64,000 nt of DNA, from positions 62,001 through 126,000 of the IMG/VR virus record IMGVR_UViG_3300034117_002447, one strand, 5' to 3'. The notes below the pieces were generated by a model that saw nothing but the letters and a program-made list of their open reading frames with translations, searched no databases and was not told the DNA's origin. A program made the translations under genes and the position numbers. How positions within the stretch are numbered: position 1 is the stretch's first letter; each line of letters opens with the position of its first letter. This document shows positions 1,687 to 62,206 of this stretch, piece by piece.

Positions 1687-2889
1687 TTAATGTGAGTCTC
1701 CAATATCGTGCTTTTCTCCGTAAATCAAATAGTCTGGATTAATTACCTTTGCTACTCGATTACGCTCACCGCTTATGTGCTTAATAACAATGCCTTCATG
1801 CGGCACCTTAGTTCCTTTGATCATATTACCAAAGACGAACTGGTCTTGTGTCTCTTGTGACCACGGTCCTGTGTATAGGACTCCAACGTGAGGTAACTCT
1901 AGCGCTTCTTTGAAAAGGAATTCAGTGTAAATAGTGGACTCGTATTTGCCGTTTACTGTGGCATCGAATCCAACGAATTCAATATCAGTCAGACCGTACT
2001 CGTAATTCTTTTGAATACCTGCACCGTAAATTTCTCCGTAAATTACAATACCAGCTCCAAGTTCACCAATCCTATTTTTAGTTTTTGCTAAGGTAAGCAA
2101 CCTGTTCTTGATATCGTACTTCTCGGCAATTGTTCTCCAGACATCAGTTGAATAGAACCCTTGAGAATCAGAACCCTTCTCGACATTATGAGATCCATAA
2201 ACGTACTCGTACTCAAAGAGCTCTCCGGCGAATCCAAAGAATTTTTTAATCCTATCCATGAAGGACAAGCGATTCTTCTTAACTATACCGTATCGTGCAT
2301 TCGTACCGTGGATCTTACGCGTGATTTGCACAATATCCTCTTCAGTAAACATTCCACTAACATTTTTCAAGTTAGGAAACTTGTAGTAGACATGAAAGTT
2401 TGGATTGTCTTGATAACGAACCTTTTTACCTGAAGCAAGTTGGACCTGTCTAACTGGCGGTTCGTACTTGAAAATTCCAAGCATCTCACTAACGTCAACT
2501 CCTTCTTCAATAACGAGTGCATCGTCATAAGGGCCCAACTGTAATTGATCGCCCCAAGGCTGTTTACTAACTCCGATCTTCATTTCTTCTGAACCTTCAA
2601 GCACATTAAGCGGAATGATTAGACACTCACTGTAAACTCCTCTCAACTTAACTGTTCTAACTCGATTGCCCTTACGCAGGTAACCGGTTACTCCCAATTT
2701 TTCGGATAACTCTTCCGGAATAACTGCATCAGTTGTTGCAATGATAACAAATTCGTCCGCCTTGTGTAGTCCTTTTTTAGTAATACAATTCCATCCACCG
2801 ATGATCGCTAACTCAATATTGTCAGCTCCTTCGATTGCCTTGATTTCTGTTACTTTTCCAATGTAACATACGCTGTTTTGATTTTCCAT
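1687..2889 (-). CDS. RNA ligase, DRB0094 family (N-terminal OB fold + ATP-dependent ligase)
   Basis: IEGADNIELA N-terminus, VKLRGVYSE, motif I KIHGTN, YGEIYG, EGIVIK. Confidence 0.9.
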   Translation of the reverse strand: MENQNSVCYIGKVTEIKAIEGADNIELAIIGGWNCITKKGLHKADEFVIIATTDAVIPEELSEKLGVTGYLRKGNRVRTVKLRGVYSECLIIPLNVLEGSEEMKIGVSKQPWGDQLQLGPYDDALVIEEGVDVSEMLGIFKYEPPVRQVQLASGKKVRYQDNPNFHVYYKFPNLKNVSGMFTEEDIVQITRKIHGTNARYGIVKKNRLSFMDRIKKFFGFAGELFEYEYVYGSHNVEKGSDSQGFYSTDVWRTIAEKYDIKNRLLTLAKTKNRIGELGAGIVIYGEIYGAGIQKNYEYGLTDIEFVGFDATVNGKYESTIYTEFLFKEALELPHVGVLYTGPWSQETQDQFVFGNMIKGTKVPHEGIVIKHISGERNRVAKVINPDYLIYGEKHDIGDSH

Positions 2890-5715: not shown

Positions 5716-5789
5716 TTTTTTTTGTTTTTATTAATTATTAAAATATAGAGATTACATTAGCCCGATTAGCTAACTACTTTGTTATTATA

Positions 5790-6176
5790 CTAAATTTCCA
5801 TACCAATTGATTTCCAATATTCAGGCCCTCCGTAATACGAGCACAATTCGTCTCCTGGATTAATATCGACTAGTGCAAAGAACGTAAAACAATTCTTTTC
5901 AGTATCATGTCTCCAATTTATATTTGGAGTTTCACTGTGATTGTAGATTCCTCCGAATCCAAGAAGAACGCCATACTCTACGCAGCCTAATTTCTCAGAA
6001 CGGCCGACTATGAATCGATAATCATTAAAAATAGGATCATCTGATGTCGCATCGAATGTTATGAAATGACATTCTTCAATAATCTCGCCTGGGCTAATAG
6101 ATTGCGTTGCGAATACTCCAAGTCCGTGTATTGGACTGGATGCGACTACTAGTTTAGAGGGTCCCGTTAATTCCAT
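5790..6176 (-). CDS. SET-domain protein (putative methyltransferase)
   Basis: SPIHGLGVFA, NHSETPN, DINPGDELCSYY. Confidence 0.9.
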   Translation of the reverse strand: MELTGPSKLVVASSPIHGLGVFATQSISPGEIIEECHFITFDATSDDPIFNDYRFIVGRSEKLGCVEYGVLLGFGGIYNHSETPNINWRHDTEKNCFTFFALVDINPGDELCSYYGGPEYWKSIGMEI

Positions 6177-13972: not shown

Positions 13973-14362
13973 TTAAACTGTCTCGTTTTCTCCTGCAAAA
14001 AAGTTCAGGATTGAACGGCTATTGCGTTGCTCATTTGATAAGCACTCAACTTGAATTTTCTTCTCTTGAATTTCTCTCTGTAAAGCGTCATGCTCTGATC
14101 GAAGGCCTGCTAATTCAGAATTGAACTTTGTACGCTCAATGAATTCAGCATCTCTTGCCTCTGCATTAGAGAAAGTTTTCTTTCCGTTTGCATCAACTTC
14201 AGAGTTAATTTCAACCTTGATTTTTGACTGGATATTGGAGATTAATTCGGTACTCTTGTTAGACTCAGTGTTTAGGTCTAAAATTTCCATTTGCAATTCT
14301 TGGATTGCTTGAGGCAATTCCATTAATCGTTCTACTGTGTTAGTTAAATTTGTATTTGTCAT
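13973..14362 (-). CDS. Coiled-coil hypothetical protein
   Basis: Heptad-rich; start moved to MTNTN. Confidence 0.65.
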   Translation of the reverse strand: MTNTNLTNTVERLMELPQAIQELQMEILDLNTESNKSTELISNIQSKIKVEINSEVDANGKKTFSNAEARDAEFIERTKFNSELAGLRSEHDALQREIQEKKIQVECLSNEQRNSRSILNFFAGENETV

Positions 14363-14446
14363 TTGTTTTAAATTAAGATACACTATTACTATACTATTAA
14401 AAATCGATTTAGGTTTAATCGGATGATAAAAAATCTAAAAAATTTG

Positions 14447-14520
14447 TGGACCATTCAGGGCTCGAACCTGAGACCTTCGCATTATGAGTGCGCTGCTCTA
14501 ACCAACTGAGCTAAAGGTCC
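14447..14520 (-). tRNA. tRNA-Ile2(CAT, lysidine type); Met not excluded
   Basis: GGACCTTTAGCTCAGTTGGTTAGAGC start typical of Ile2; loop CTCATAA. Confidence 0.8.
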
Positions 14521-14571
14521 TGGTGGAGGGATTATTTTTTTAGAGTAGAATTCGCCCACCTCAAAACTACT

Positions 14572-14658
14572 TGGTGCCGCAGGTAGGATTCGAACCTACT
14601 CAGCCTTACGACAACAGATTTACAGTCTGTCCTGACTCTCCAACTTCAGCGCTACGGC
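14572..14658 (-). tRNA. tRNA-Tyr(GTA)
   Basis: ACAGA-CTGTAAA-TCTGT; long variable arm; CCA. Confidence 0.9.
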
Positions 14659-14796
14659 AGGTAAGGAAATGAGAAGATGGTTCAGTGGACATCTCATTTT
14701 ACGATTAGCATTACTCTGGTGAATGCCTGCAAACTCCGATTATGTCAGTCAGCATTCACTCTCGAACTATTGACACAATCATTCCCTAATCAACCT

Positions 14797-14871
14797 TGGC
14801 TGGGTGTCCAGGATTCGAACCTGGGACCACTCGATTAACAGTCGAGAGCTCTACCGCTGAGCTAACACCCA
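14797..14871 (-). tRNA. tRNA-Asn(GTT)
   Basis: CTCGA-CTGTTAA-TCGAG; CCA. Confidence 0.95.
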
Positions 14872-14878
14872 ATAAAAT

Positions 14879-14978
14879 AAAAGAACCTCGACCACCATTT
14901 CAGCGCAAGCGCGTGCTTTCAGCTAGGCTTGAACGTTACGTCCTAGCTGGTGGAGTCAGCCTCTACTAAGGTTCTTTT
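14879..14978 (-). ncRNA. Structured inter-tRNA RNA closed by a 10-bp stem
   Basis: AAAAGAACCT/AGGTTCTTTT ends; inner CAGCTAGG/CCTAGCTG. Confidence 0.5.
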
Positions 14979-14979
14979 G

Positions 14980-15056
14980 TCGAGATGGCAGGATTCGAAC
15001 CTGCGAGTTCTCCTGCTCCCAAAGCAGGCGGGGTAACCGGACTCCCCAACATCTCG
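14980..15056 (-). tRNA. tRNA-Pro(TGG)
   Basis: CCTGC-TTTGGGA-GCAGG. Confidence 0.95.
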
Positions 15057-15345
15057 ATAATTTGCTCCATACTGAGACTTGTACGAAGACTGGATTTTAA
15101 CGGGTTTCTCTGACTGTTTCGAGAACCATATCCCTTATTGACGTCTTAGACTATACGGTCCTCCCCCAATAAGTCTTTTTCATTAGTGTCTTACCACATA
15201 AAAACCTGTCAACTCTCTACGTCGGCGCGGCAGAGTCTTGCTCACGTTTACCCGAATCGATCCCCCATTAAGGTCGAGGACTTTTTCACTACCATCGCTT
15301 TTTTAAAGAATGCGACCAATCTTACTGAGTATCTCTTGCTCATAG

Positions 15346-15418
15346 TAGTCCCTGTAGGATTCGAACCTACGACCCTCTGCATGTAAAACAGATGCTCTAC
15401 CAACTGAGCTAAAGGACT
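15346..15418 (-). tRNA. tRNA-Val(TAC)
   Basis: TCTGT-TTTACAT-GCAGA. Confidence 0.95.
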
Positions 15419-15499
15419 GTTTGATACGCTTTCGCCCCCTGTATGACGTATCACCGATGTTTGAGGTCGGCCTCGAACCATTAAGGGAGCCACCGGTCG

Positions 15500-15572
15500 A
15501 GCGGATGGCGAGAATCGAACTCGCATCTCCAGCTTGGAAGGCTGGAGTAATAAGCCATTATACGACATCCGC
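15500..15572 (-). tRNA. tRNA-Gly(TCC)
   Basis: CCAGC-CTTCCAA-GCTGG; U73. Confidence 0.95.
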
Positions 15573-15575
15573 TTA

Positions 15576-15651
15576 TGGAGCGGGAGGCCGGGTTCGAACC
15601 GGCGACCTCAACCTTGGCAAGGTTGCGCTCTACCAACTGAGCTACTCCCGC
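15576..15651 (-). tRNA. tRNA-Gly(GCC)
   Basis: CAACC-TTGCCAA-GGTTG; CCA. Confidence 0.97.
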
Positions 15652-15830
15652 AAGTGGGTGGGATCAGACGCGTTCTGCCCACCGGGACCTCGTCGTTAGA
15701 AAGTCTTGCGACTAACCAGAGCGTACCGAGACACTATCTAACTTCGACTTGAGGTAGTCACGGCCGCCTCTGATCCTCTCAAGTCTATTTCGTATCGTGG
15801 CAAAATGCGGCACGACCCTAATACGATGTG

Positions 15831-15904
15831 AGCCTCCTGACGGATTCGAACCGCCGACATCCTCATTACAAGTGAGGCGCTCTGGCCAACTGAGCTAAGG
15901 AGGC
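15831..15904 (-). tRNA. tRNA-Thr(TGT)
   Basis: CCTCA-CTTGTAA-TGAGG. Confidence 0.95.
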
Positions 15905-15909
15905 AATGT

Positions 15910-15986
15910 TGGTGGACCGTGAGAGACTCGAACTCTCGACCCCCGCAGTGCAAGTGCGGTGCTCTAGCCAACTGAGCTAACAGCCC
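15910..15986 (-). tRNA. tRNA-Ala(TGC)
   Basis: CCGCA-CTTGCAC-TGCGG; G3:U70; CCA. Confidence 0.97.
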
Positions 15987-15990
15987 ATTT

Positions 15991-16130
15991 AAGAACAACG
16001 TTGGAGTACCCGTCTCGCTCCAATCTTAACAGCTTCATCAGAGTTTTCTCTGGGCCCAGGCTGAGGGTGGTGAACTCTTGATCCGACCGTGATTGTCGAC
16101 ATCACATTGGCCGGAGAGACCGTTGTTCTT
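15991..16130 (-). ncRNA. Structured inter-tRNA RNA with possible pseudoknot
   Basis: Perfect 10-bp closing stem AAGAACAACG/CGTTGTTCTT and three inner hairpins. Confidence 0.55.
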
Positions 16131-16132
16131 AG

Positions 16133-16204
16133 TAGCCCGTACGAGAATCGAACTCGTCTCTCACCCGTGAAAGGGGCGTGTCCTAACCGATAGACTAACG
16201 GGCC
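16133..16204 (-). tRNA. tRNA-Glu(TTC)
   Basis: CGCCC-CTTTCAC-GGGTG. Confidence 0.95.
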
Positions 16205-16209
16205 AAATA

Positions 16210-16391
16210 AAAGTATACCGTGCTCCGGTTTTTACTTATGGTTTGTTCCCCATAACCTGATACTGTGCACAGTAGAGCAGGGACCTGAACAGAGTACCTT
16301 GGGTCATTTATATCTCTCCGGTTGGGTAGCTAATCCCATGGAGCCAAGGTTCCTTTCATCCGTGCAAGTCGGACTTCTGTTGATATACTTT
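16210..16391 (-). ncRNA. Multibranch structured inter-tRNA RNA
   Basis: Closing stem AAAGTATA/TATACTTT with at least six nested helices. Confidence 0.55.
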
Positions 16392-16393
16392 CG

Positions 16394-16465
16394 CGGTCCC
16401 ACCGGGAATCGAACCCGGCATACCGCCGTGACAGGGCGGCGTTATAGCCGATTAACTACAGGACC
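16394..16465 (-). tRNA. tRNA-Asp(GTC)
   Basis: CCGCC-CTGTCAC-GGCGG; G73. Confidence 0.95.
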
Positions 16466-16574
16466 ATTTCTCTCCAGTTCACTCCTACCCTGTGGGTATA
16501 CCGTGACGGGTTGTTTATCCATGCAAATCTACCTGAAGAGCGATTGGTTTGCGCTCGACGTGCATGGATCCGGG

Positions 16575-16680
16575 TGATTAGAGCCGGACTCGAACCGGAT
16601 ACCGTGCAAGACGGAGTAGACAACCTTACCTCTTTCGAGTTCGGGACTTGGGTACCATCCCGCATTACGCCCATCTAATC
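16575..16680 (-). ncRNA. tRNA-like RNA (GATTAGA acceptor) with non-canonical core
   Basis: 7-bp acceptor GATTAGA/TCTAATC, T arm CCGG-TTCGAGT-CCGG; core has other hairpins and no standard D or anticodon arm. Confidence 0.65.
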
Positions 16681-16685
16681 ATTAG

Positions 16686-16757
<72 letters not shown>

Positions 16758-16762
16758 ATATG

Positions 16763-16833
16763 TTGTCCCGCAAGGATTCGAACCTCGATCTTCTGGACCA
16801 AAACCAGACGTGCTGCCATTACACCACAGGACA
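16763..16833 (-). tRNA. tRNA-Gln(TTG)
   Basis: TCTGG-TTTTGGT-CCAGA; U1:A72. Confidence 0.95.
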
Positions 16834-16930
16834 ATTTTCAATCTCCAATAAGTCAAAGAACTCTTGTTAAACTTATATGATTACTATACCACATTAGGTT
16901 TAATTTAGTCACTTTCTTTCGAAAGATTTG

Positions 16931-17001
16931 CACGGTCGGAGAGATTCGAACTCCCATCTAGGGTTTTGGAGACCCGCATGCTACCATTGCACCACATCCG
17001 T
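16931..17001 (-). tRNA. tRNA-Trp(CCA)
   Basis: Loop CTCCAAA; G73; one acceptor mismatch. Confidence 0.9.
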
Positions 17002-17010
17002 GTATTCTTT

Positions 17011-17088
17011 TGGTTGCGGGACCCGGACTCGAACCGGGAACTTCAGCTTATGAGACTGACGAGATAACCGCTTTCTACGCATCCCGCA
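17011..17088 (-). tRNA. tRNA-Met(CAT)
   Basis: TCAGT-CTCATAA-GCTGA; CCA; irregular D arm. Confidence 0.85.
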
Positions 17089-17093
17089 ATGTT

Positions 17094-17170
17094 TGGTTGG
17101 AATAATAGGAATCGAACCTATAACCTTTCGCGTATCAGGCGAATGCTCTAACCAATTGAGCTATATTCCA
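17094..17170 (-). tRNA. tRNA-Ile(GAT)
   Basis: TTCGC-CTGATAC-GCGAA; CCA. Confidence 0.95.
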
Positions 17171-17176
17171 GTTTAG

Positions 17177-17250
17177 TGTCCCCGACAGGACTCGAACCTG
17201 TGACTCCCTCATTAAAAGTGAGGTGCTCTAACCAACTGAGCTACGAAGAC
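17177..17250 (-). tRNA. tRNA-Lys(TTT)
   Basis: CCTCA-CTTTTAA-TGAGG. Confidence 0.95.
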
Positions 17251-17290
17251 CTGTGTATTTAGACCTGTAACTCTGGGAGTCACTGGGCCT

Positions 17291-17320
17291 TTAGCGTTTA
17301 CGTTTCATATTCTTATTCAT
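17291..17320 (-). CDS. Candidate micro-ORF MNKNMKRKR inside the tRNA array
   Basis: A-rich upstream tract, ATG...TAA, immediately followed by a hairpin. Confidence 0.35.
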   Translation of the reverse strand: MNKNMKRKR

Positions 17321-17328
17321 TTTTTTGT

Positions 17329-17404
17329 TGGTGGTGAGGGGCGGGATCGAACCGCCGACACCAGGATTTTCAGTCCTGTGCTCTACCATCTGAGCTACCT
17401 CACC
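17329..17404 (-). tRNA. tRNA-Phe(GAA), first gene of the array
   Basis: CAGGA-CTGAAAA-TCCTG; CCA. Confidence 0.97.
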
Positions 17405-17409
17405 ATGCT

Positions 17410-17445
17410 AAAACAAAAAACCTCGAATTTTTTAGGTTCGAGGTT
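17410..17445 (-). terminator. Attenuator terminator upstream of the tRNA array
   Basis: AACCTCGAA-CCTAAAAAA-TTCGAGGTT followed by TTTTGTTTT, 5 nt before tRNA-Phe. Confidence 0.85.
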
Positions 17446-17493
17446 CGTTGTTGTTAGTTATGTAATTTCTTAACTTATACCACTAGAACCTCG
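17439..17493 (-). promoter_or_regulatory. Antiterminator (mutually exclusive with the terminator)
   Basis: CGAGGTTC (17493-17486, in the leader ORF) is the perfect complement of GAACCTCG (17446-17439, terminator 5' arm); inner AGTTA/TAACT helix. Confidence 0.75.
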
Positions 17494-17601
17494 CAATACC
17501 CCAAAATCTTTAATCGTCTCCATTGCAATCACATTAACTGTGCCTGCCGGATACTGATTCCAGTTTTGAGTATTTTTTGATATGTTCGTAGTTATTTGCA
17601 C
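17470..17601 (-). CDS. Leader peptide (43 aa) MQITTNISKNTQNWNQYPAGTVNVIAMETIKDFGVLRGSSGIS
   Basis: GTG start after ACAAAAAAATTAAACTC; lies between promoter motifs and the terminator; below the ORF-track cut-off. Confidence 0.75.
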   Translation of the reverse strand: MQITTNISKNTQNWNQYPAGTVNVIAMETIKDFGVLRGSSGIS

Positions 17602-17621
17602 GAGTTTAATTTTTTTGTCTA

Positions 17622-17665
17622 GTTATTTATCTAGTTATTATACCAACTTTTTAAAAAAGGTTTCC
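17622..17665 (-). promoter_or_regulatory. Tandem promoters of the leader/tRNA operon
   Basis: GGAAAC-N16-GTATAAT (17665-17637) plus GATAAATAAC (17631-17622). Confidence 0.65.
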
Positions 17666-17677
17666 CTTTACTAAAAA

Positions 17678-18241
17678 TTACTTTATCATTGCTGCAAGTT
17701 TTTCGTTTGCTTGATCGATCTTAGAGAATTTAGACTCAAAGAAAGACTTTAACTTGGCAACGATTGCTGTGATTTTACCAGACAACCTAGCAACGATCGC
17801 TTTAGCTTTATCAGTTAATTTAGATTCATCTAGTTTTTCAATATCGTATGAGTGTTTTACGTTTGATATTGCTGTGTTTTGTCTAACACATTCGTTGATA
17901 ATTGCTTGAGCAGCAGCATCGACTAACCCTAGTGCCTGCTCTACAGCTTTAGCATAAGATGGGTTTTCAGAAGATCCGCCGTATCTTGAAATCTTGATAA
18001 CGTATTTTTCAGTTGTTGCAAGCTTATCATTTAGGACTTTCATTGCATCAAAGATCGGCTTCATTGTTGCATCAAATGCACCAAGCTCAGTATTGATAGC
18101 TTTTGTTTCAGCTGTCAATTCTTTTAATCGAGTTTTGATTTCGTGAATTCTATCAAGCTTAGCAACGATAGTTTTATCTTTGATTTGAGCTTCGTTAATC
18201 TTTGCTTCGTTAACAAATTGTGTGAATCTTTTAAGTTTCAT
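17678..18241 (-). CDS. Coiled-coil protein with capsid-targeting-like N-terminus
   Basis: MKLKRFTQFVNE; ATAAATAA upstream. Confidence 0.7.
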   Translation of the reverse strand: MKLKRFTQFVNEAKINEAQIKDKTIVAKLDRIHEIKTRLKELTAETKAINTELGAFDATMKPIFDAMKVLNDKLATTEKYVIKISRYGGSSENPSYAKAVEQALGLVDAAAQAIINECVRQNTAISNVKHSYDIEKLDESKLTDKAKAIVARLSGKITAIVAKLKSFFESKFSKIDQANEKLAAMIK

Positions 18242-18267
18242 TTTAAAAAGTAATTTTTGTTTATTTA

Positions 18268-18819
18268 TTAATAACGATCATCGTCGTAATCATCGTAGTC
18301 AGGCTCATCAGGTTCAAAATCCTCAACCGCTCTATCGAGAGCAGAGTCAGTTCTTTTTTTGAAAGTACCAGTTAAATCGACTAGAGTATTTGAATCGTAA
18401 AGAGCTTTGAATTTATTAATGAAGTCCTTGAGCTCTTCTCCTGTAATTTCTTCTTGCTCTGCATCGTATATTAAATCGCCAATTGCTGCATATTCATCAG
18501 CTCCTTCAAATCCCATGCTTTTTAACTCTTCAGCTTCAGGGGAATCTAGCATGGCTTTAACCTGCGAAATTACTGAAGGATCAGTTACTTTATACACTCC
18601 GTCTACTCCATCAAAGTCAACATCATCAACTGAATAGCCGCCAACGAATCCGACACTGCTATCGTCAGGCTCATAATCGAAAGATACGTCTAGTGTAACA
18701 AGCCAAATTATGTAGATTATTTCGTCTATTAAGAATATATTTTCTTCAACTTCAATAACTGACGAAGATTCTGTTATCAAGCTCTCTTTTACAAATTGTG
18801 AAAATCTCTTAAGTTTCAT
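18268..18819 (-). CDS. Acidic protein with capsid-targeting-like N-terminus
   Basis: MKLKRFSQFVKE; ATAAATAA upstream. Confidence 0.7.
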   Translation of the reverse strand: MKLKRFSQFVKESLITESSSVIEVEENIFLIDEIIYIIWLVTLDVSFDYEPDDSSVGFVGGYSVDDVDFDGVDGVYKVTDPSVISQVKAMLDSPEAEELKSMGFEGADEYAAIGDLIYDAEQEEITGEELKDFINKFKALYDSNTLVDLTGTFKKRTDSALDRAVEDFEPDEPDYDDYDDDRY

Positions 18820-18840
18820 TAGGGATCTTATTTTTATTAT

Positions 18841-19098
18841 TTATCCCTTAGTTCTGCCCAAAACTTCTACTGATACAGATACTCCATCTGGATTCTTTCT
18901 AACTCTGATAGTCGCTTCATCGAATCCCCTAATCCACAGTAGATCTTCAAGTACTTCCTGAACATCGTCCGGATAGACTTCCGGATGAACTAGCCCCGGT
19001 TGGTACGGGTCATGTTCTAATTTCTCAGTAAACTCAAGAACGAGACGTTTCATGTCCGCCTCGTTCTTTAGTGCATTTAATATAGAGCCTTTTGCCAT
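18841..19098 (-). CDS. Hypothetical protein
   Basis: Coupled ORF. Confidence 0.6.
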   Translation of the reverse strand: MAKGSILNALKNEADMKRLVLEFTEKLEHDPYQPGLVHPEVYPDDVQEVLEDLLWIRGFDEATIRVRKNPDGVSVSVEVLGRTKG

Positions 19099-19796
19099 TA
19101 CGATACGTATTTTGCAAAGTTAACTGCTGCCTTGTAAGCATCTTCATACGAATGAATTGTCTTAGCACCACGTAGTCTAAAAGGAATATGATCTACTGCC
19201 CAACCAGCAAGGGTCATTTCTTCTTCTGACGCTTTATGGTCAGAGGTACTCTTTGCCCATTCTTCGCACTCTTTATAATACGAGTCCAGGTGCTTGCCGT
19301 AGAACTTTTCGTATTGAGGAAGGTCTTGTTCAGCAGGTTTCCATTTAGCATCAAATAGTTTATCGCCTTTTCCGAATGCACAAGAAGCACGGTGAGAATA
19401 ACCAATCCACTGCTTTGCCTTCTTACTCCATGCAGTATGAGGATGAGATCCCTTTGTTGCTCTGAGGCCATTGTTGTAGTACCACCAACCTTCTTCAATT
19501 GATCCAACGTAAACTCCGTCTGGATTCATGCATGAATTGGGTAATGAGTACTCATCGTCTGGTCCGAACTTATGAACTCCTACCTTTAGCCCAGTAGTTG
19601 CTTCAATTTGTTTAATACATTCAGGATTTACAGCCCAACCTTCCAAATCTCTTTCAGGTCGGATTCGGCTTACTAACTTAGTAAATCCCAGATCCAAGTG
19701 GATCTTATTTAATTTAGTTTTGCCAGTGTAGTGAGGAAATCTCTCGAACTTCAACTGAATTTTGCCAAGGTATGGCGTTTGATTTTTAATTAACAT
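19098..19796 (-). CDS. Hypothetical phage protein
   Basis: WIGYSHRA...FGKGDKLFD motif. Confidence 0.65.
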   Translation of the reverse strand: MLIKNQTPYLGKIQLKFERFPHYTGKTKLNKIHLDLGFTKLVSRIRPERDLEGWAVNPECIKQIEATTGLKVGVHKFGPDDEYSLPNSCMNPDGVYVGSIEEGWWYYNNGLRATKGSHPHTAWSKKAKQWIGYSHRASCAFGKGDKLFDAKWKPAEQDLPQYEKFYGKHLDSYYKECEEWAKSTSDHKASEEEMTLAGWAVDHIPFRLRGAKTIHSYEDAYKAAVNFAKYVS

Positions 19797-19810
19797 ATAC
19801 TGTTATTTTT

Positions 19811-19999
19811 TTAATAAGGATCAACTACCTCATCGACTGCGTCAGATAAGTCTTCGCCGACCGAGTTTATTAAATCCTTTGTTGCGGTAGCTTCGCCACC
19901 GGTTGCCACGTCAACTGCATCCTTTACGACTGCGATTGGTGACAATGCTGTTTTTACTGTTGCGCTTGCTATATTAGCGATTGCTCCGAATAGTCCCAT
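19811..19999 (-). CDS. Hypothetical protein
   Basis: Short amphipathic ORF with A-rich start. Confidence 0.6.
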   Translation of the reverse strand: MGLFGAIANIASATVKTALSPIAVVKDAVDVATGGEATATKDLINSVGEDLSDAVDEVVDPY

Positions 20000-20015
20000 T
20001 GTTTATTGATTTTTT

Positions 20016-20103
20016 TGGCGGAGGATGTAGGATTCGAACCTACGGTACCTTGCGGTACAACAGTTTTCAAGACTGCCGCGATCGACCACTCTGCCAATCC
20101 TCC
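20016..20103 (-). tRNA. tRNA-Ser(TGA)
   Basis: GCAGT-CTTGAAA-ACTGT; long variable arm; G73; CCA. Confidence 0.97.
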
Positions 20104-20109
20104 TTTGAG

Positions 20110-20373
20110 TTACTTAGACTCGATTATATTATACGTACCTTCCATTACGCCATAACTCGATTCTTCATGGAACTGATAGGTTTGAGCAACATCACTTGAA
20201 TCCATCGGCCGAGTCAAATACCAGATTTGAGTCTCTTTCCACGTTACAGTTACCAATTTTCTGCCCTTTGGTAAATTGATAGTGCCTTCACCGCCGAAGT
20301 TTTTAACTCGCGAGTTTTCAGTACATGAAGCGAATGAGAATAGGATCGCTGTTAAAATTACTAATTTTTTCAT
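20110..20373 (-). CDS. Putative lipoprotein
   Basis: Signal peptide ending FASC. Confidence 0.7.
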   Translation of the reverse strand: MKKLVILTAILFSFASCTENSRVKNFGGEGTINLPKGRKLVTVTWKETQIWYLTRPMDSSDVAQTYQFHEESSYGVMEGTYNIIESK

Positions 20374-20381
20374 ATTGATTT

Positions 20382-20600
20382 TTATTTTAGAAAAAAGGAA
20401 AACGTTTCCTTAATGATTGTGATATTTACTTCATGCATGATTAACCATTTAATCCAAGCGAATGGCATGAAAAAGAAGTCCATGATCGCCCAAAAAATGC
20501 TATTGTGAATCTGATAACCGATCATCGCAGTTAGCAGTGCAAAGATTGAATAAATTCCAGGATTCCAAACAACTCGTGGTTTATTAGTTTCTATTTCCAT
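20382..20600 (-). CDS. Small membrane protein
   Basis: Two hydrophobic segments. Confidence 0.6.
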   Translation of the reverse strand: MEIETNKPRVVWNPGIYSIFALLTAMIGYQIHNSIFWAIMDFFFMPFAWIKWLIMHEVNITIIKETFSFFLK

Positions 20601-20607
20601 AGAGTTA

Positions 20608-21291
20608 TTATACTAAATTTTCTGATCTTGGTTCAACGTTAATAACTGGCGGGCGATTATGCCATAGTCGATATCGTTCATCGACCACTGACGCATTAAT
20701 AAATGTAGTACCGCCTATTTCTACTTGGCCCATCTCTTCGTGTATGTGGCCGAATACATGAACTTGGGGTTTAATTTGATCAACCTTAGCCTTTAGACTT
20801 TTACAACCAACGCTCCAACCTTCTCTGATAGTTTTATCCAAGATTCCATGAGGAGGCCCGTGCGTTATCAGAACATCAATTCCTTCCGGAATAAGATCCC
20901 AATGTGGACCTATTTCATTTTCATATCGATTAAATGCCCAATTATGAAAGAATGGAGTTACTGGACTTCCCCAGAATTTAATACCCTCAATCGTTACGCC
21001 ACTATCATTTAAGTAGGTAATTCCAGGATACTCAGCAAGCAGAGCCTGAACCTCCTCTGGTTTTGCTACCTCAAAAAAGAAGTCGTGGTTTCCAGCAATT
21101 AGGATCTTATGCATATAGGGTTGTGAACTAAACCATTTAAGGAATACTCTAATTTCACGCTCAGTTCCACGCCCAGATACATCACCTGCGTGGACCAAGA
21201 TAGGACCTCCAGGCAGAAGATCATTTAGGTCTTCTGTATTAACTGGATCAGATACAATCCAATGTGTATCACTTATAAATGTAATTTCCAT
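20608..21291 (-). CDS. Metallophosphoesterase (MPPED/239FB-like)
   Basis: ISDTH, HAGD, AGNHD, THGPP, FGHIHE. Confidence 0.9.
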   Translation of the reverse strand: MEITFISDTHWIVSDPVNTEDLNDLLPGGPILVHAGDVSGRGTEREIRVFLKWFSSQPYMHKILIAGNHDFFFEVAKPEEVQALLAEYPGITYLNDSGVTIEGIKFWGSPVTPFFHNWAFNRYENEIGPHWDLIPEGIDVLITHGPPHGILDKTIREGWSVGCKSLKAKVDQIKPQVHVFGHIHEEMGQVEIGGTTFINASVVDERYRLWHNRPPVINVEPRSENLV

Positions 21292-55359: not shown

Positions 55360-55485
55360 TAGTCAGGACAGGATTCGAACCTGTATGATAACTTATGAGC
55401 AGTCTTAACGGGTCTTTCGAGGTTACTCACGTTATCCTTACTATTAACCTTTATTCATGCGTCTAACCAATTCCGCCACCTGACT
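55360..55485 (-). ncRNA. tRNA-like RNA (AGTCAGG family, copy 3)
   Basis: Leu-type D arm GCGGAATTGGTTAGACGC; long GATAAC/GTTATC hairpin core; identical 3' 24-mer. Confidence 0.75.
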
Positions 55486-55559
55486 AAATGAATGAGGTGC
55501 ATTAACCTATTGTGAATCCATAATGGAGTGCATCGGTAAATTGTGAACTCATTCTTTTG

Positions 55560-55650
55560 TAGTCAGGACAGGATTCGAACCTGTAAGTTTCCGATCGCAA
55601 CGATACCATATCCTATTTTTGGAGTCGAACCAACTTTAAGCCACCTGACT
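55560..55650 (-). ncRNA. tRNA-like RNA (AGTCAGG family, copy 4) with a second T-loop hairpin
   Basis: TTGG-TTCGACT-CCAA where the D arm should be; identical 3' 24-mer. Confidence 0.7.
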
Positions 55651-55699: not shown

Positions 55700-56150
55700 T
55701 GCGTCCCAAAGCTTAGAGGCGCGCCCTACTACTCTAAGAAATTATACTACTCTAAGAAGAAACTCTATAGGCAAGACTCTGTCTACTTATATACATAAAA
55801 AGAAAAATAACGGGTATACCAGACCCTATACCCAACCCTATTCAGAACCCTATCCTATAGACCCAGACCTAGACTAGCCAAGACCAAGGTACCGGACTCT
55901 TACCTAGGCCAGGACCCGGACCCCAGCCTGCCCAGCCAACCACCGGCCTACTCGGGACTAGGGAGTACAGGCAGCTGGCAGCGCCCAAAGGATACAGACT
56001 GTGCATTTATGGGGACTAGGGAGTAACCCCTGCCTCGGCTCCGCGGCCCGACCGGAAGCCCCAGAGTCTAGAGGGGCCCGAGTAGGCGGGGTCTAGCCGG
56101 AAACCGCGGGAACCCGGGCCCGTGGACTTCTCGACCAGCAGCTGGGTACC
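55700..56150. other. Non-coding, strand-skewed, partly GC-rich region (candidate origin/terminus/packaging site)
   Basis: Direct repeat ACTACTCTAAGAA x2, CCC tracts, divergent gene orientation, first ACTAGGGAGT copies. Confidence 0.45.
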
Positions 56151-61936: not shown

Positions 61937-62206
61937 TTAGTGGTTTACGGGTTTATAGGTTGGATCTAATTCGTCAGCTAACTTCTTCAAGTCAGCGCAT
62001 TTCTCGAACTCTTCGTTCTTCTCAAAATGTTTTATCATAGTCCATATTGCTTGAGTCTTATCTTCAACTGGACTCTTATCATGTATTACATCTTTAAATT
62101 CTCCAGTCAAGGCTTCGTACAAGCGATTCATAAAGGCCGAGTAATCCGTCTGTCTTAGATGGATGAGGTCCAATAGAATCTTTGTATAATTATTTAAGTC
62201 TGACAT
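61937..62206 (-). CDS. Hypothetical protein (UVR-like C-terminus)
   Basis: FEKNEEFEKCADLK. Confidence 0.6.
   Translation of the reverse strand: MSDLNNYTKILLDLIHLRQTDYSAFMNRLYEALTGEFKDVIHDKSPVEDKTQAIWTMIKHFEKNEEFEKCADLKKLADELDPTYKPVNH

Follow-up and report, generated by a model that had tools for sequence, protein, structure and literature searches.

In the minus strand of an uncultured freshwater giant phage, a small reading frame, inferred from its conservation to be translated, sits directly in front of the transfer-RNA genes, and its end can pair with, and so disable, an intrinsic transcription terminator. The conservation of this arrangement suggests that the phage makes more of its own tRNAs when translation runs slowly, a control not described for tRNA genes. 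The region lies in a 64,000-nt stretch of IMG/VR record IMGVR_UViG_3300034117_002447 (positions 62,001 to 126,000), referred to here as the window. The original prediction had described a leader-peptide attenuator whose codons sample every tRNA of the array, and its observation was confirmed and is not explained by chance. Its interpretation is only partly supported, as the attenuator geometry is well supported by comparison of 18 distinct versions of the module from uncultured phages, whereas the sampling of every tRNA is not supported in full.

Organization of the leader region

All elements named in the original prediction were found where it had placed them. The features, all on the minus strand, are as follows.
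17660-17665 (-), -35-like element GGAAAC of the leader promoter
17637-17645 (-), extended -10 element TGGTATAAT, containing TATAAT
17625-17631 (-), second -10-like element, GATAAAT here
17470-17601 (-), leader ORF, GTG start at 17601, 43 sense codons plus TAA at 17470
17539-17568 (-), invariant peptide core QNWNQYPAGT (codons 12-21)
17486-17493 (-), antiterminator 5' strand CGAGGTTC (codons 37-39)
17456-17475 (-), small predicted hairpin AGUUA/UAACU enclosing the stop codon, inside the antiterminator loop
17437-17446 (-), shared strand, serving as antiterminator 3' strand and terminator 5' arm (G + AACCTCGAA)
17410-17445 (-), intrinsic terminator with 9-bp stem AACCTCGAA (17445-17437) / TTCGAGGTT (17427-17419), 9-nt loop CCTAAAAAA and U tract TTTTGTTTT (17418-17410)
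17329-17404 (-), tRNA-Phe(GAA), first gene after the terminator, 6 nt from the U tract
16930-17250 (-), tRNA-Lys, Ile, Met(CAT) and Trp, the rest of the promoter-proximal group, with no promoter of its own
16883-16891 (-), internal promoter TGGTATAGT in the Trp-Gln spacer

The promoter, originally placed only as motifs upstream of the ORF, is better described as GGAAAC (17665-17660) followed after 17 nt by TATAAT. This is a phage promoter class, as TRGTATAAT has 12 exact copies in the window, all on the minus strand, against 1.57 expected, lying in intergenic positions and often just after terminators. The same GGAAAC (or GAAAC) occurs at the same spacing at several of the other copies and in relatives, and conservation among relatives begins at this element even where the upstream gene differs. 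The second -10-like element reads TATAAAT in most of the other 17 variants, is nearly invariant in the alignment, and is the only -10-like element left in loci L032 and L047/L051 (L numbers denote loci from related phages); whether it acts as a second promoter or as a 5'UTR element is undecided. A promoter-like TGGTATAAG inside the 3' end of the ORF (17482-17474) was rejected as a promoter because it occurs only in the window's own lineage.

The antiterminator strand CGAGGTTC at 17493-17486 is the perfect complement of GAACCTCG at 17446-17439, so that pairing with the end of the ORF and formation of the terminator are mutually exclusive. A perfect 8-nt complement to the terminator arm within the 178 nt upstream arises in 0.5% of shuffles (P = 0.005). 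An automatic terminator scan missed the minus-strand hairpin only because its loop limit is 8 nt. tRNA-Phe is the first of 18 tRNAs, which run down to 14446, and there is no room for a promoter between the U tract and this gene, nor was any promoter motif found between 17404 and 16912.

The internal -10 element that the original prediction had suspected near 16880-16890 is real and conserved. T[GA]GTATAnT is present in the Trp-Gln spacer of nearly every relative examined, with a variant carrying one extra base in L008 and L036, and is followed by the conserved GTTCTTTGACATATTGGAGAT. The terminator therefore solely gates only tRNA-Phe, Lys, Ile, Met(CAT) and Trp, and 13 of the 18 tRNAs do not depend on the leader.

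Conservation of the module in uncultured phages

The absence of the reading frame or of covariation in relatives had been named in advance as grounds for rejecting the attenuator, and the 18 variants have the reading frame and show compensatory changes in the pairing. The ORF is open in 18 of 18 variants (40-46 codons), the start codon alternates between GTG and ATG in the same alignment column, and indels inside the ORF are 3 or 6 nt, whereas those outside are 1-2 nt. The peptide core is invariant in the 14 closer variants, with synonymous-only changes within it in L045, and W-N-Q-x-P-x-G is kept in L051, with different Pro and Gly codons, between clades that are only 33% identical. These features are those of a short translated ORF between a promoter and its regulated genes, although translation itself was not observed. 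pN/pS over the whole ORF was uninformative (0.4-0.9), because change is concentrated in a few variable codons. Why the order of residues in the core is conserved is unexplained.

Every variant keeps a complement of 7-11 contiguous Watson-Crick pairs to the terminator's 5' arm (pairs were counted in Python). The innermost pair is C:G in most variants, U:A in L009, L045 and L062, and U:G in L046, which we read from the peptide groupings, without building a tree, as three apparently independent C:G to U:A changes plus an intermediate. Loss of the outer pair (CGA to AGA) is offset by new pairs at the other end in L045 and L061, L063 shows a register shift, and L051 carries the same 8-mer in another reading frame, which rules out conservation through the peptide alone, while the flanking columns vary and do not pair. 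Sequence diversity is nonetheless low, and six of the eight pairs never vary. The strand ends 12-14 nt before the stop codon in 17 of 18 variants (8 nt in L051), even in L063, where both the strand and the stop have moved, and the stop-to-arm distance is 23-29 nt. This places the strand where a ribosome at the end of the leader would block it and one stalled earlier would not, a functional consequence that is inferred from known ribosome footprints.

In the minimum-energy fold of the nascent RNA, the shared strand is held by the end of the ORF in 18 of 18 variants. This statistic discriminates only modestly, as other terminators of this phage also find 1-8 upstream partners, with uninterrupted helices of up to 6 against 8 here. 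The energies of the two structures are balanced, the antiterminator domain being -12 to -20 kcal/mol and the terminator -10.7 to -14.6 across this comparison. At equilibrium the terminator conformation of the full segment is favoured (-21.6 against -17.6 kcal/mol), so the switch depends on kinetics. The small hairpin enclosing the stop codon is predicted in every one of 14 variants folded separately, with arms that differ in sequence and register, and also in L051, but it is weak (-2 to -5.5 kcal/mol) and its support is modest. A classical 1:2 anti-antiterminator helix was also sought. RNAalifold proposed a long hairpin between codons 11-16 and 30-35, but all of its pairs are invariant with no covariation, three variants delete part of it and one-sided changes break its extension, leaving it unsupported, though not refuted.

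The stem and loop of the terminator are invariant wherever the ORF is present. In the ORF-less relatives L011 and L012 the stem carries a compensatory C-G to U-A change, and in L049 the same hairpin serves as an ordinary end-of-array terminator, in agreement with a genuine terminator. At -9.8 to -11.7 kcal/mol it is weaker than five other terminators of this phage, which range from -15 to -19. No promoter lies between terminator and tRNA wherever the ORF is present, whereas in L011 and L012 a TGGTATATT-type promoter follows the U tract. L007 keeps promoter and terminator in front of tRNAs without ORF or antiterminator, and the terminator may therefore simply be leaky.

A second module of the same design, with a different sequence, sits before tRNA-Asp in L051 and L066. 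A related second leader family (family 2; L066, L068 and L075-L077) shares with the first an N-terminal M-[KQ]-x-x-T-N-I-S and a C-terminal Ser-stop, but in most of its members a -10-like GAGTAT(T)ATAAC lies between the terminator and the first tRNA, which fits a stand-alone small gene.

In order to place the peptide, several searches were conducted. No Pfam or PHROG family matched the 43-residue product, and only 5 clusters appeared among 5.8 billion proteins. A profile search of 1.84 billion representatives returned six short proteins of this family, its remaining weak hits being long, repetitive proteins, and the peptide occurs only at the head of tRNA arrays. Among cultured phage genomes, blastn found only tRNA-Phe, and tblastn with both leader peptides found nothing credible. 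A search for related loci with a mixed alignment, and an exact look-up and homologue search for the L047 peptide, likewise returned nothing. AlphaFold on the 14-sequence alignment gave a low-confidence model (pLDDT 57, pTM 0.20), on which no fold search was run.

Codon content of the leader and the tRNA array

As originally claimed, codons 1-35 contain all 15 amino acids served by the array and lack Leu, Arg, His and Cys. A failure of this set to stand out from random windows had been set beforehand as a refutation, and the comparison was made against the real ORFs of this phage. All 15 amino acids occur within 35 codons with P = 0.0098, and before the first L/R/H/C, a statistic that needs no chosen cut-off, with P = 0.0012. 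For all 15 in the whole 43-codon ORF, P = 0.042 (0.048 against dinucleotide shuffles of the leader itself). The statistics were, however, chosen after the pattern was seen. One correction to the codon assignments is needed, as ACT (twice) and GTT require expanded U34 wobble to be read by the array's Thr(TGT) and Val(TAC).

Whether leader codon sets track array content across relatives had also been proposed as a test, and the outcome was mixed. Contig IMGVR_UViG_3300035703_000009 (locus L051), from a divergent clade, carries 35 tRNAs for all 20 amino acids, and its homologous 40-codon leader contains all 20, including the Arg, Leu, His and Cys absent here (P = 0.0024 against real ORFs and 0.007 against shuffles), with every leader codon but one having a strict-wobble cognate in the array. 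All 17 clade-1 leaders keep the set of 15 despite 30-50% sequence change, with Tyr relocated in L061 and L062. L063 has an Arg AGA codon in the sensing zone and a tRNA-Arg(TCT) in its array, and in 13 of 13 lineages no amino acid served by the array is missing from the leader. The leader does not follow array loss, however, as the same peptide heads arrays of 10, 11 and 13 tRNAs, and L061 lacks Gly and Val tRNAs. Isoacceptors are not tracked either, as 25 of 31 anticodon classes are covered in L051 (P = 0.03), and no leader has an AAG codon although Lys(ctt) is present in some arrays. Family-2 leaders in front of 20-amino-acid arrays show ordinary diversity, with only 12-16 different residues in 27 codons. 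There are only about two independent contrasts, and the two leaders share a core that already supplies nine residues.

Interpretation and alternative explanations

We consider a ribosome-dependent transcription attenuator in front of phage tRNA genes to be the more likely explanation, though by no means a certain one. In this view, transcription would start at the GGAAAC-N17-TATAAT promoter and the 43-codon leader would be translated. On RNA that is naked, or on which the ribosome has stalled early, the last part of the ORF (17493-17486) would pair with the 5' arm of the terminator (17446-17439), helped by the small hairpin around the stop codon, so that the terminator could not form and RNA polymerase would read on into tRNA-Phe, Lys, Ile, Met(CAT) and Trp. 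If instead the ribosome reached the end of the ORF in step with the polymerase, its footprint at the stop codon would cover that strand, which lies 13 nt upstream of the stop, and the weak terminator would form, ending transcription 6 nt before tRNA-Phe. The quantity sensed would be how fast about 32 varied codons are decoded, that is, the general tRNA or decoding capacity, and the result would be negative feedback on the phage's own tRNA supply. The analysis itself establishes the promoter class, the conservation of coding, the terminator, the conserved alternative pairing and the conserved spacing, whereas the choice between the two structures by ribosome position, and the signal that slows the ribosome in nature, are inferences. 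All of this evidence comes from sequence comparison without experimental or transcript data, and the response of read-through to charged-tRNA supply was not measured. The conserved amino-acid sequence of the core is not something that a simple ribosome-transit leader requires.

The broader model of the original prediction, in which the codon set was selected to hold one cognate codon for every tRNA so that depletion of any single tRNA induces the whole replacement set as a counter to host tRNA-cleaving defences, is doubtful. The codon statistics and L051 favour it, and the phage also carries an RNA ligase and a Tad6 homologue and so has other genes of kinds linked to tRNA repair and anti-defence, but the link to anticodon nucleases was not examined. 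Against it stand the retained leaders of reduced arrays, the isoacceptors, the internal promoter and family 2, the strict positional conservation of the core, which sampling does not need, and the position of codons 33-36, including the only Phe codon, at or inside the footprint that would begin to occlude the antiterminator. It is still possible, if unlikely, that the leader is a pan-tRNA gauge shaped to contain a codon for every amino acid for which the phage carries a tRNA (15 of 15 here, 20 of 20 with the 35-tRNA array), so that shortage of any one of those tRNAs, from host shut-off or tRNA-cleaving defences, would slow the leader ribosome and switch on the phage's own tRNA genes; this would be a homeostatic, many-input attenuator with no described precedent.

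A stand-alone microprotein gene with its own partly leaky terminator, the proximal tRNAs arising by constitutive read-through and the complementarity being a by-product, is unlikely. The amino-acid conservation of the core, the termini shared by families 1 and 2, the -10-like motif after the family-2 terminator, L007 and the weakness of the terminator are in its favour, but compensatory maintenance of the complement, its fixed distance to the stop and its conservation across a frame change are not expected of a by-product, and the peptide has no protein family, no confident model and no occurrence away from tRNA arrays in the searches above. The A-rich N-terminal codons (K, N, I, T) may, by our inference, reflect Shine-Dalgarno-independent initiation in Bacteroidota rather than peptide function. 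Somewhat less likely still is a nascent-peptide sensor, in which the core would act inside the ribosome tunnel to pause translation in response to a specific ligand or state, as TnaC, SecM or SpeFL do, and the pause would set termination. The invariant core, its synonymous-only substitutions and a leader that is long for a classical attenuator fit this reading, yet no family hit indicates similarity to a known arrest peptide and no ligand logic is evident for tRNA genes; sequence alone does not bear on it further. A non-coding structured RNA with its own promoter and terminator and an incidental ORF is very unlikely. The segment 17400-17625 folds better than shuffles (z = -4.8), nucleotide conservation is very high, including at synonymous sites, and promoter and hairpin persist without the ORF in L007, L011 and L012, but a purely non-coding reading was rejected because the reading frame is preserved, no Rfam family covers the leader, and the upstream long hairpin shows no covariation and is partly deleted in three variants.

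Relation to described systems

Leader-peptide transcription attenuators of amino-acid operons (trpL, hisL, pheL, thrL, leuL, ilvL) have the same order of promoter, short translated ORF, mutually exclusive antiterminator and intrinsic terminator, and regulated genes; ribosome position is thought to choose the structure, and a ribosome at the leader stop codon favours termination. Here the regulated genes are tRNAs rather than biosynthetic enzymes, and there is no run of any codon and no cluster of regulatory codons for one amino acid, the 43 residues including 18 different amino acids. The leader is long and conserved in sequence, the switch appears to have two states through direct occlusion of the antiterminator strand, with no demonstrable 1:2 helix, and the element is phage-encoded, probably in a phage of Bacteroidota. 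In a permissive Rfam scan of 14000-21000, Thr_leader (RF00506) gave only a sub-threshold hit of 25.9 bits (E = 0.13; gathering threshold 55 bits), covering 17412-17478, the terminator region.

Leader attenuators of antibiotic-resistance genes that respond to translation inhibition (ermK, vmlR, msrD and bmrCD type) use a non-repetitive uORF in which a stall at many positions frees an antiterminator, reporting general elongation trouble rather than one amino acid. Their inducers are ribosome-targeting drugs and their outputs resistance proteins, whereas here the output, tRNA, would relieve the very defect that is sensed, closing a feedback loop. T-box riboswitches also couple the state of a tRNA to read-through of an intrinsic terminator by stabilising an antiterminator, but they bind uncharged tRNA directly, have no ORF, sense one tRNA species and regulate aminoacyl-tRNA synthetase or amino-acid genes, and the Rfam scan of 14000-21000 gave no T-box hit. 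Phage tRNA clusters such as that of T4 are transcribed as polycistronic precursors from upstream promoters and are interspersed with small stable RNAs and homing-endonuclease genes; full-text literature searches found no leader-ORF or terminator switch described upstream of such clusters.

tRNA genes are generally thought to be controlled at their promoters and by RNA processing, and a translation-coupled attenuator in front of them would be a new regulatory logic, in which the product directly corrects the defect that is sensed. It would show that phages regulate their tRNA arrays rather than merely carrying them, would connect to the current interest in tRNA depletion and cleavage as an antiviral strategy, and would explain why some phage arrays are organised into sub-operons. 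The element is small (about 260 nt), has clear predicted mutant phenotypes and is accessible to reporter or cell-free systems without culture of the phage. If the many-codon reading is right, it would also be a compact natural sensor of overall decoding capacity.

Additional sequence features

The hairpin was also considered as a host-derived regulatory element, since Pedobacter chromosomes carry the AACCTTGAA...TTCAAGGTT version, but there it is an ordinary terminator after a protein gene, with no tRNA nearby. A hairpin with a U tract in the Pro-Asn spacer (14872-14985) was considered as a second attenuator and rejected, as its fold is not significant (z = -1.8). Beyond the tRNAs listed in the original prediction, the window also carries tRNA-Leu(TAG) at 462-542 and two tRNA-like elements at 55360-55650.

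Organization of the leader module

On the minus strand, the region upstream of the tRNA array begins with the end of a gene encoding 187 residues and continues through a promoter, a short open reading frame (ORF) and a hairpin into the first tRNA gene. The elements, all on the minus strand, are as follows.

17680-17678: stop codon of the 187-residue gene
17665-17660: GGAAAC, followed by 17 nt
17645-17637: TGGTATAAT, containing TATAAT
17631-17625: GATAAAT, a second -10-like element
17601-17470: GTG-initiated leader ORF of 43 codons, followed by a 24-nt spacer
17493-17486: CGAGGTTC, codons 37-39 of the ORF
17446-17439: GAACCTCG, the exact complement of CGAGGTTC
17445-17419: hairpin with a 9-bp stem, AACCTCGAA / TTCGAGGTT, and a 9-nt loop
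17418-17410: U tract TTTTGTTTT
17404: tRNA-Phe, six bases after the U tract and the first of 18 tRNAs, which run to 14446

The original prediction placed a promoter, a 43-codon leader, a terminator and an exact complement between the two in front of this array, and that description is accurate. The promoter belongs to a genuine phage promoter class. The motif TRGTATAAT occurs 12 times in the window (4225, 5792, 10030, 11247, 17645, 20615, 22138, 39753, 42804, 51696, 55749 and 62243), always on the minus (coding) strand, against 1.6 copies expected. These copies are usually intergenic, several directly follow intrinsic terminators, and several have GGAAAC about 15-17 nt upstream. Two of them (51696 and 55749) are followed by G+C-rich sequence that looks non-coding.

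Genomic context and relatives

The window comes from a phage of about 270 kb known only from freshwater metagenomes, with identical copies in IMG/VR and JGI contigs. A phage protein (24125-26047, plus strand) has a cohesin domain and a type-IX-secretion C-terminal sorting domain. In addition, the terminator hairpin sequence (the AACCTTGAA version) recurs as an ordinary terminator in several Pedobacter genomes and in a Bergeyella MAG (loci L052-L060). Both observations hint at a Bacteroidota host, although one further match lies in an Acutalibacteraceae MAG. A homologue of the type I Thoeris inhibitor Tad6 (19098-19796, minus strand; PF25188, E = 5.5e-22) lies three genes upstream of the leader, and the same gene order is kept in relatives (loci L038-L044 and L064). 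An RNA ligase gene with an OB-fold domain (1687-2889, minus strand; PF09414, E = 3e-15) sits beside a lone tRNA-Leu(TAG) gene (462-542), which is suggestive of tRNA repair.

In order to examine conservation, 18 distinct versions of the module, referred to here by locus number, were collected through the neighboring gene, through DNA patterns, through exact-protein look-ups and through a profile search of 1.84 billion proteins. Conservation starts sharply at the -35-like element, even where the upstream gene is different, and runs through the 5'UTR, ORF, spacer and terminator at about 85-95% identity among the closer variants. By contrast, the neighboring protein is only 65-88% identical, and the spacers after tRNA-Phe cannot be aligned.

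Comparative evidence for a translated leader and a terminator

Whether relatives would carry a conserved upstream ORF had been set out beforehand as a test of the prediction, and the ORF proved to be open in 18 of 18 variants, with a length of 40-46 codons. The start codon is GTG in 12 variants and ATG in 6, in the same alignment column, and indels inside the ORF are 3 or 6 nt while those in the UTR and spacer are 1-2 nt. In variant L045 the core Pro-Ala-Gly-Thr carries three synonymous changes, and in the divergent variant L051 the W-N-Q-x-P-x-G motif is kept with different Pro and Gly codons. Translation of the ORF is supported by this pattern of conservation, although it was not observed directly. 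The product matched no family in searches of Pfam and PHROGs, and AlphaFold gave only a low-confidence model.

The hairpin was retained independently of the ORF. In three relatives (L007, and independently L011/L012) the ORF has been cleanly deleted, yet promoter and hairpin remain. In L011/L012 the stem carries a compensatory C-G to U-A change, and a TGGTATATT-type promoter follows the U tract before the first tRNA. In L049 a second copy of the same hairpin ends the array and is followed by a promoter and a protein gene. These observations identify the hairpin as a terminator. Where the ORF is present, nothing but 4-8 nt separates the U tract from the tRNA, with the exception of L063, in which a 213-residue ORF has been inserted between terminator and tRNA-Phe. 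Protein-coding insertions occur inside or next to the arrays of relatives (L013 7960-8802, L039 7051-7683 and L063 9442-10083); one has a NUMOD3 hit and another is this 213-residue ORF, and they look like mobile endonuclease genes.

The alternative pairing is under selection

The core result of the comparison is that every one of the 18 variants has 7-11 contiguous Watson-Crick pairs between the end of the ORF and the 5' arm of the terminator. Covariation of these two strands among relatives was also a condition posed at the outset, and changes that preserve the pairing were found. The innermost pair is C:G in most variants, U:G in L046, and U:A in L009, L045 and L062, which belong to three different peptide subgroups. 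Where CGA became AGA and the outer pair was lost, a new pair appears at the other end (L045 and L061). L026 gains an A:U pair, L008 and L034 extend the helix to 10-11 bp, and L063 uses a shifted register (AGGTTCGAG with CTCGAACCT). In L051 the same CGAGGTTC is read as Ser-Glu-Val-Arg instead of Arg-Gly-Ser, so the constraint acts on the RNA and not through the peptide alone. The columns flanking the helix vary freely and do not pair.

The position of the pairing strand is also conserved, as it ends 12-14 nt before the stop codon in 17 of 18 variants, even in L063, where the strand and the stop codon both moved. The stop-to-arm distance is 23-29 nt. With known ribosome footprints, this geometry lets a terminating ribosome cover the strand while leaving the terminator arms free. 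The energies of the two structures are balanced, at -12 to -20 kcal/mol for the antiterminator domain and -10.7 to -14.6 kcal/mol for the terminator hairpin. The hairpin here (-9.8 to -11.7) is weaker than five other terminators of the same phage (-15 to -19). The nascent transcript folds into the antiterminator in 18 of 18 variants, but a control on other terminators shows that this statistic alone discriminates only modestly. An 8-nt complement arises in 0.5% of shuffles.

A second terminator-like signal lies directly in front of a tRNA in the Pro-Asn spacer (14872-14985, minus strand), which can form a long hairpin ending in CGAGGTTC plus a U tract 8 nt before tRNA-Asn, but the fold is not significant (z = -1.8).

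Reach of the proposed control within the tRNA array

A possible internal -10 element near 16880-16890 had been raised with the original prediction as a caveat. The Trp-Gln spacer of nearly every relative was found to hold a T[GA]GTATAnT promoter motif (16891-16883 in the window). In the window (16883-16912, minus strand) and in the Trp-Gln spacers of L006-L042, this conserved internal promoter is followed by a conserved 21-nt block of unknown role, GTTCTTTGACATATTGGAGAT, which contains TTGACA and lies just before tRNA-Gln. The leader and terminator therefore solely gate only Phe, Lys, Ile, Met(CAT) and Trp, as Gln and the 12 tRNAs after it have at least one promoter of their own. tRNA-Ser (20103) and tRNA-Leu (542) also have promoter-like motifs of their own. 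The claim that the whole array is induced through the leader is not supported.

Codon content of the leader and the tRNA array

The original prediction further held that the leader samples every tRNA of the array. In the window, codons 1-35 hold all 15 amino acids served by the array and none of Leu, Arg, His or Cys. How readily such a set arises by chance had been specified in advance as a challenge to this reading. The probability of finding all 15 in 35 codons is 0.0098, that of finding all 15 before the first Leu, Arg, His or Cys is 0.0012, and that of finding all 15 in the whole ORF is 0.042-0.048. All 17 clade-1 leaders, which include that of the window, keep this set, with Tyr moved to other positions in L061 and L062. 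A comparison of leader codons with array content across relatives had likewise been proposed as a test. The divergent clade (L047/L051, 33% identical) sits inside a 35-tRNA array that serves all 20 amino acids, and its 40-codon leader contains all 20 (P = 0.0024 against real ORFs and 0.007 against shuffles), with Arg, Leu, His and Cys appearing at codons 5-12. L063 has an AGA codon in the sensing zone and a tRNA-Arg(TCT) in its array, which on its own is weak evidence.

Other observations weigh against a codon set chosen to match the array. The favorable cases amount to about two independent contrasts, the statistics were chosen after the pattern was seen, and the two leaders share a core that supplies nine residues. 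Arrays reduced to 10, 11 or 13 tRNAs keep the same leader, L061 lacks Gly and Val tRNAs, and isoacceptors are not followed. The only Phe codon (33) and codons 34-36 lie at or inside the footprint that would mask the antiterminator, and the positional conservation of the core is not what a mere codon sampler needs. In a related second family of modules, most members have leaders of ordinary diversity before arrays covering 20 amino acids. In total, the pan-tRNA interpretation is partly supported. We therefore treat a general decoding-speed sensor as the best-supported reading, and a codon set selected to mirror the array as a live but unproven refinement that we hold only tentatively.

A second family of leader modules

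In L051 the first tRNA (Asp) is preceded by another module (5763-5951), consisting of a promoter with TAGTATAAAT, a 28-codon ORF (5797-5883) with 17 different residues, and a hairpin AACCTCAAC / GTTGAGGTT with a U tract, with the tRNA 20 nt later. AGTTGAG, which spans the stop codon, is complementary to the 5' arm of the hairpin. The N-terminal motif M-[KQ]-x-x-T-N-I-S is shared with the first family. The same hairpin heads arrays in eight other viral contigs (L066, L068, L070-L072 and L075-L077). L066 resembles L051 in having no promoter after the terminator and 17 different residues in 28. In L068, L070-L072 and L075-L077 a -10-like GAGTAT(T)ATAAC lies between terminator and first tRNA, and the leaders have only 12-16 different residues in 27. 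As the search pattern fixed the stem, covariation could not be assessed in this family. The recurrence shows that modules of an upstream ORF plus terminator at the heads of tRNA groups are a general feature of these phages, and it also cautions against the pan-tRNA reading.

Comparison with known regulators

The element has the structural features of ribosome-mediated attenuators, namely a leader ORF conserved as coding sequence, a terminator, an exclusive alternative helix and ribosome-compatible spacing. It lacks their hallmark run of regulatory codons, and it controls tRNA genes rather than biosynthetic genes. This architecture is what the comparative evidence supports well, whereas the proposal that translation of the leader sets read-through is an inference in which we have moderate confidence. 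In logic the element is closest to the translation-stress attenuators of antibiotic-resistance genes, where a stall at many positions induces expression; here, however, the output feeds back on the input. It is not a T-box and matches no Rfam family. No description of a leader-ORF attenuator upstream of phage or bacterial tRNA genes was found in the full-text literature library that was searched, an absence that applies to that library only.

Additional RNA elements in and around the arrays

The Asp-Glu spacer of the tRNA array (16230-16291, minus strand) contains a match to the freshwater-1 RNA motif (RF02979), which scores 67.3 bits, just under the gathering score of 72 (E = 2.5e-14). Several long, G+C-rich spacers between tRNAs (14660-16680, minus strand) look structured, including 16470-16680, which has a T-arm-like GGTTCGAGTCC, as well as 15060-15340 and 15655-15830; these may be further tRNA-like or small RNA genes. 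There is also a weak YrlA (Y RNA-like) hit at 15845-15962, and a relative (L040) encodes a TROVE/Ro60 protein downstream of its array. Among the relatives L013 (9250-9327), L039, L040 and L041, and L014 and L036, some carry a suppressor-type tRNA with anticodon TTA inside the array, and others carry a tRNA that ARAGORN calls SeC(TCA), about 6 kb downstream of the leader.

Finally, two tRNA-like elements (55360-55485 and 55560-55650, minus strand) share identical acceptor and T arms (AGTCAGG...CCTGACTA) and carry long insertions, with Rfam scores of 37 and 31 bits. ARAGORN in intron mode calls the first (55360-55485) tRNA-Leu(aag) with a 43-nt intron. Both lie downstream of a TAGTATAAT promoter at 55749, and a similar element precedes the leader in L047/L051.
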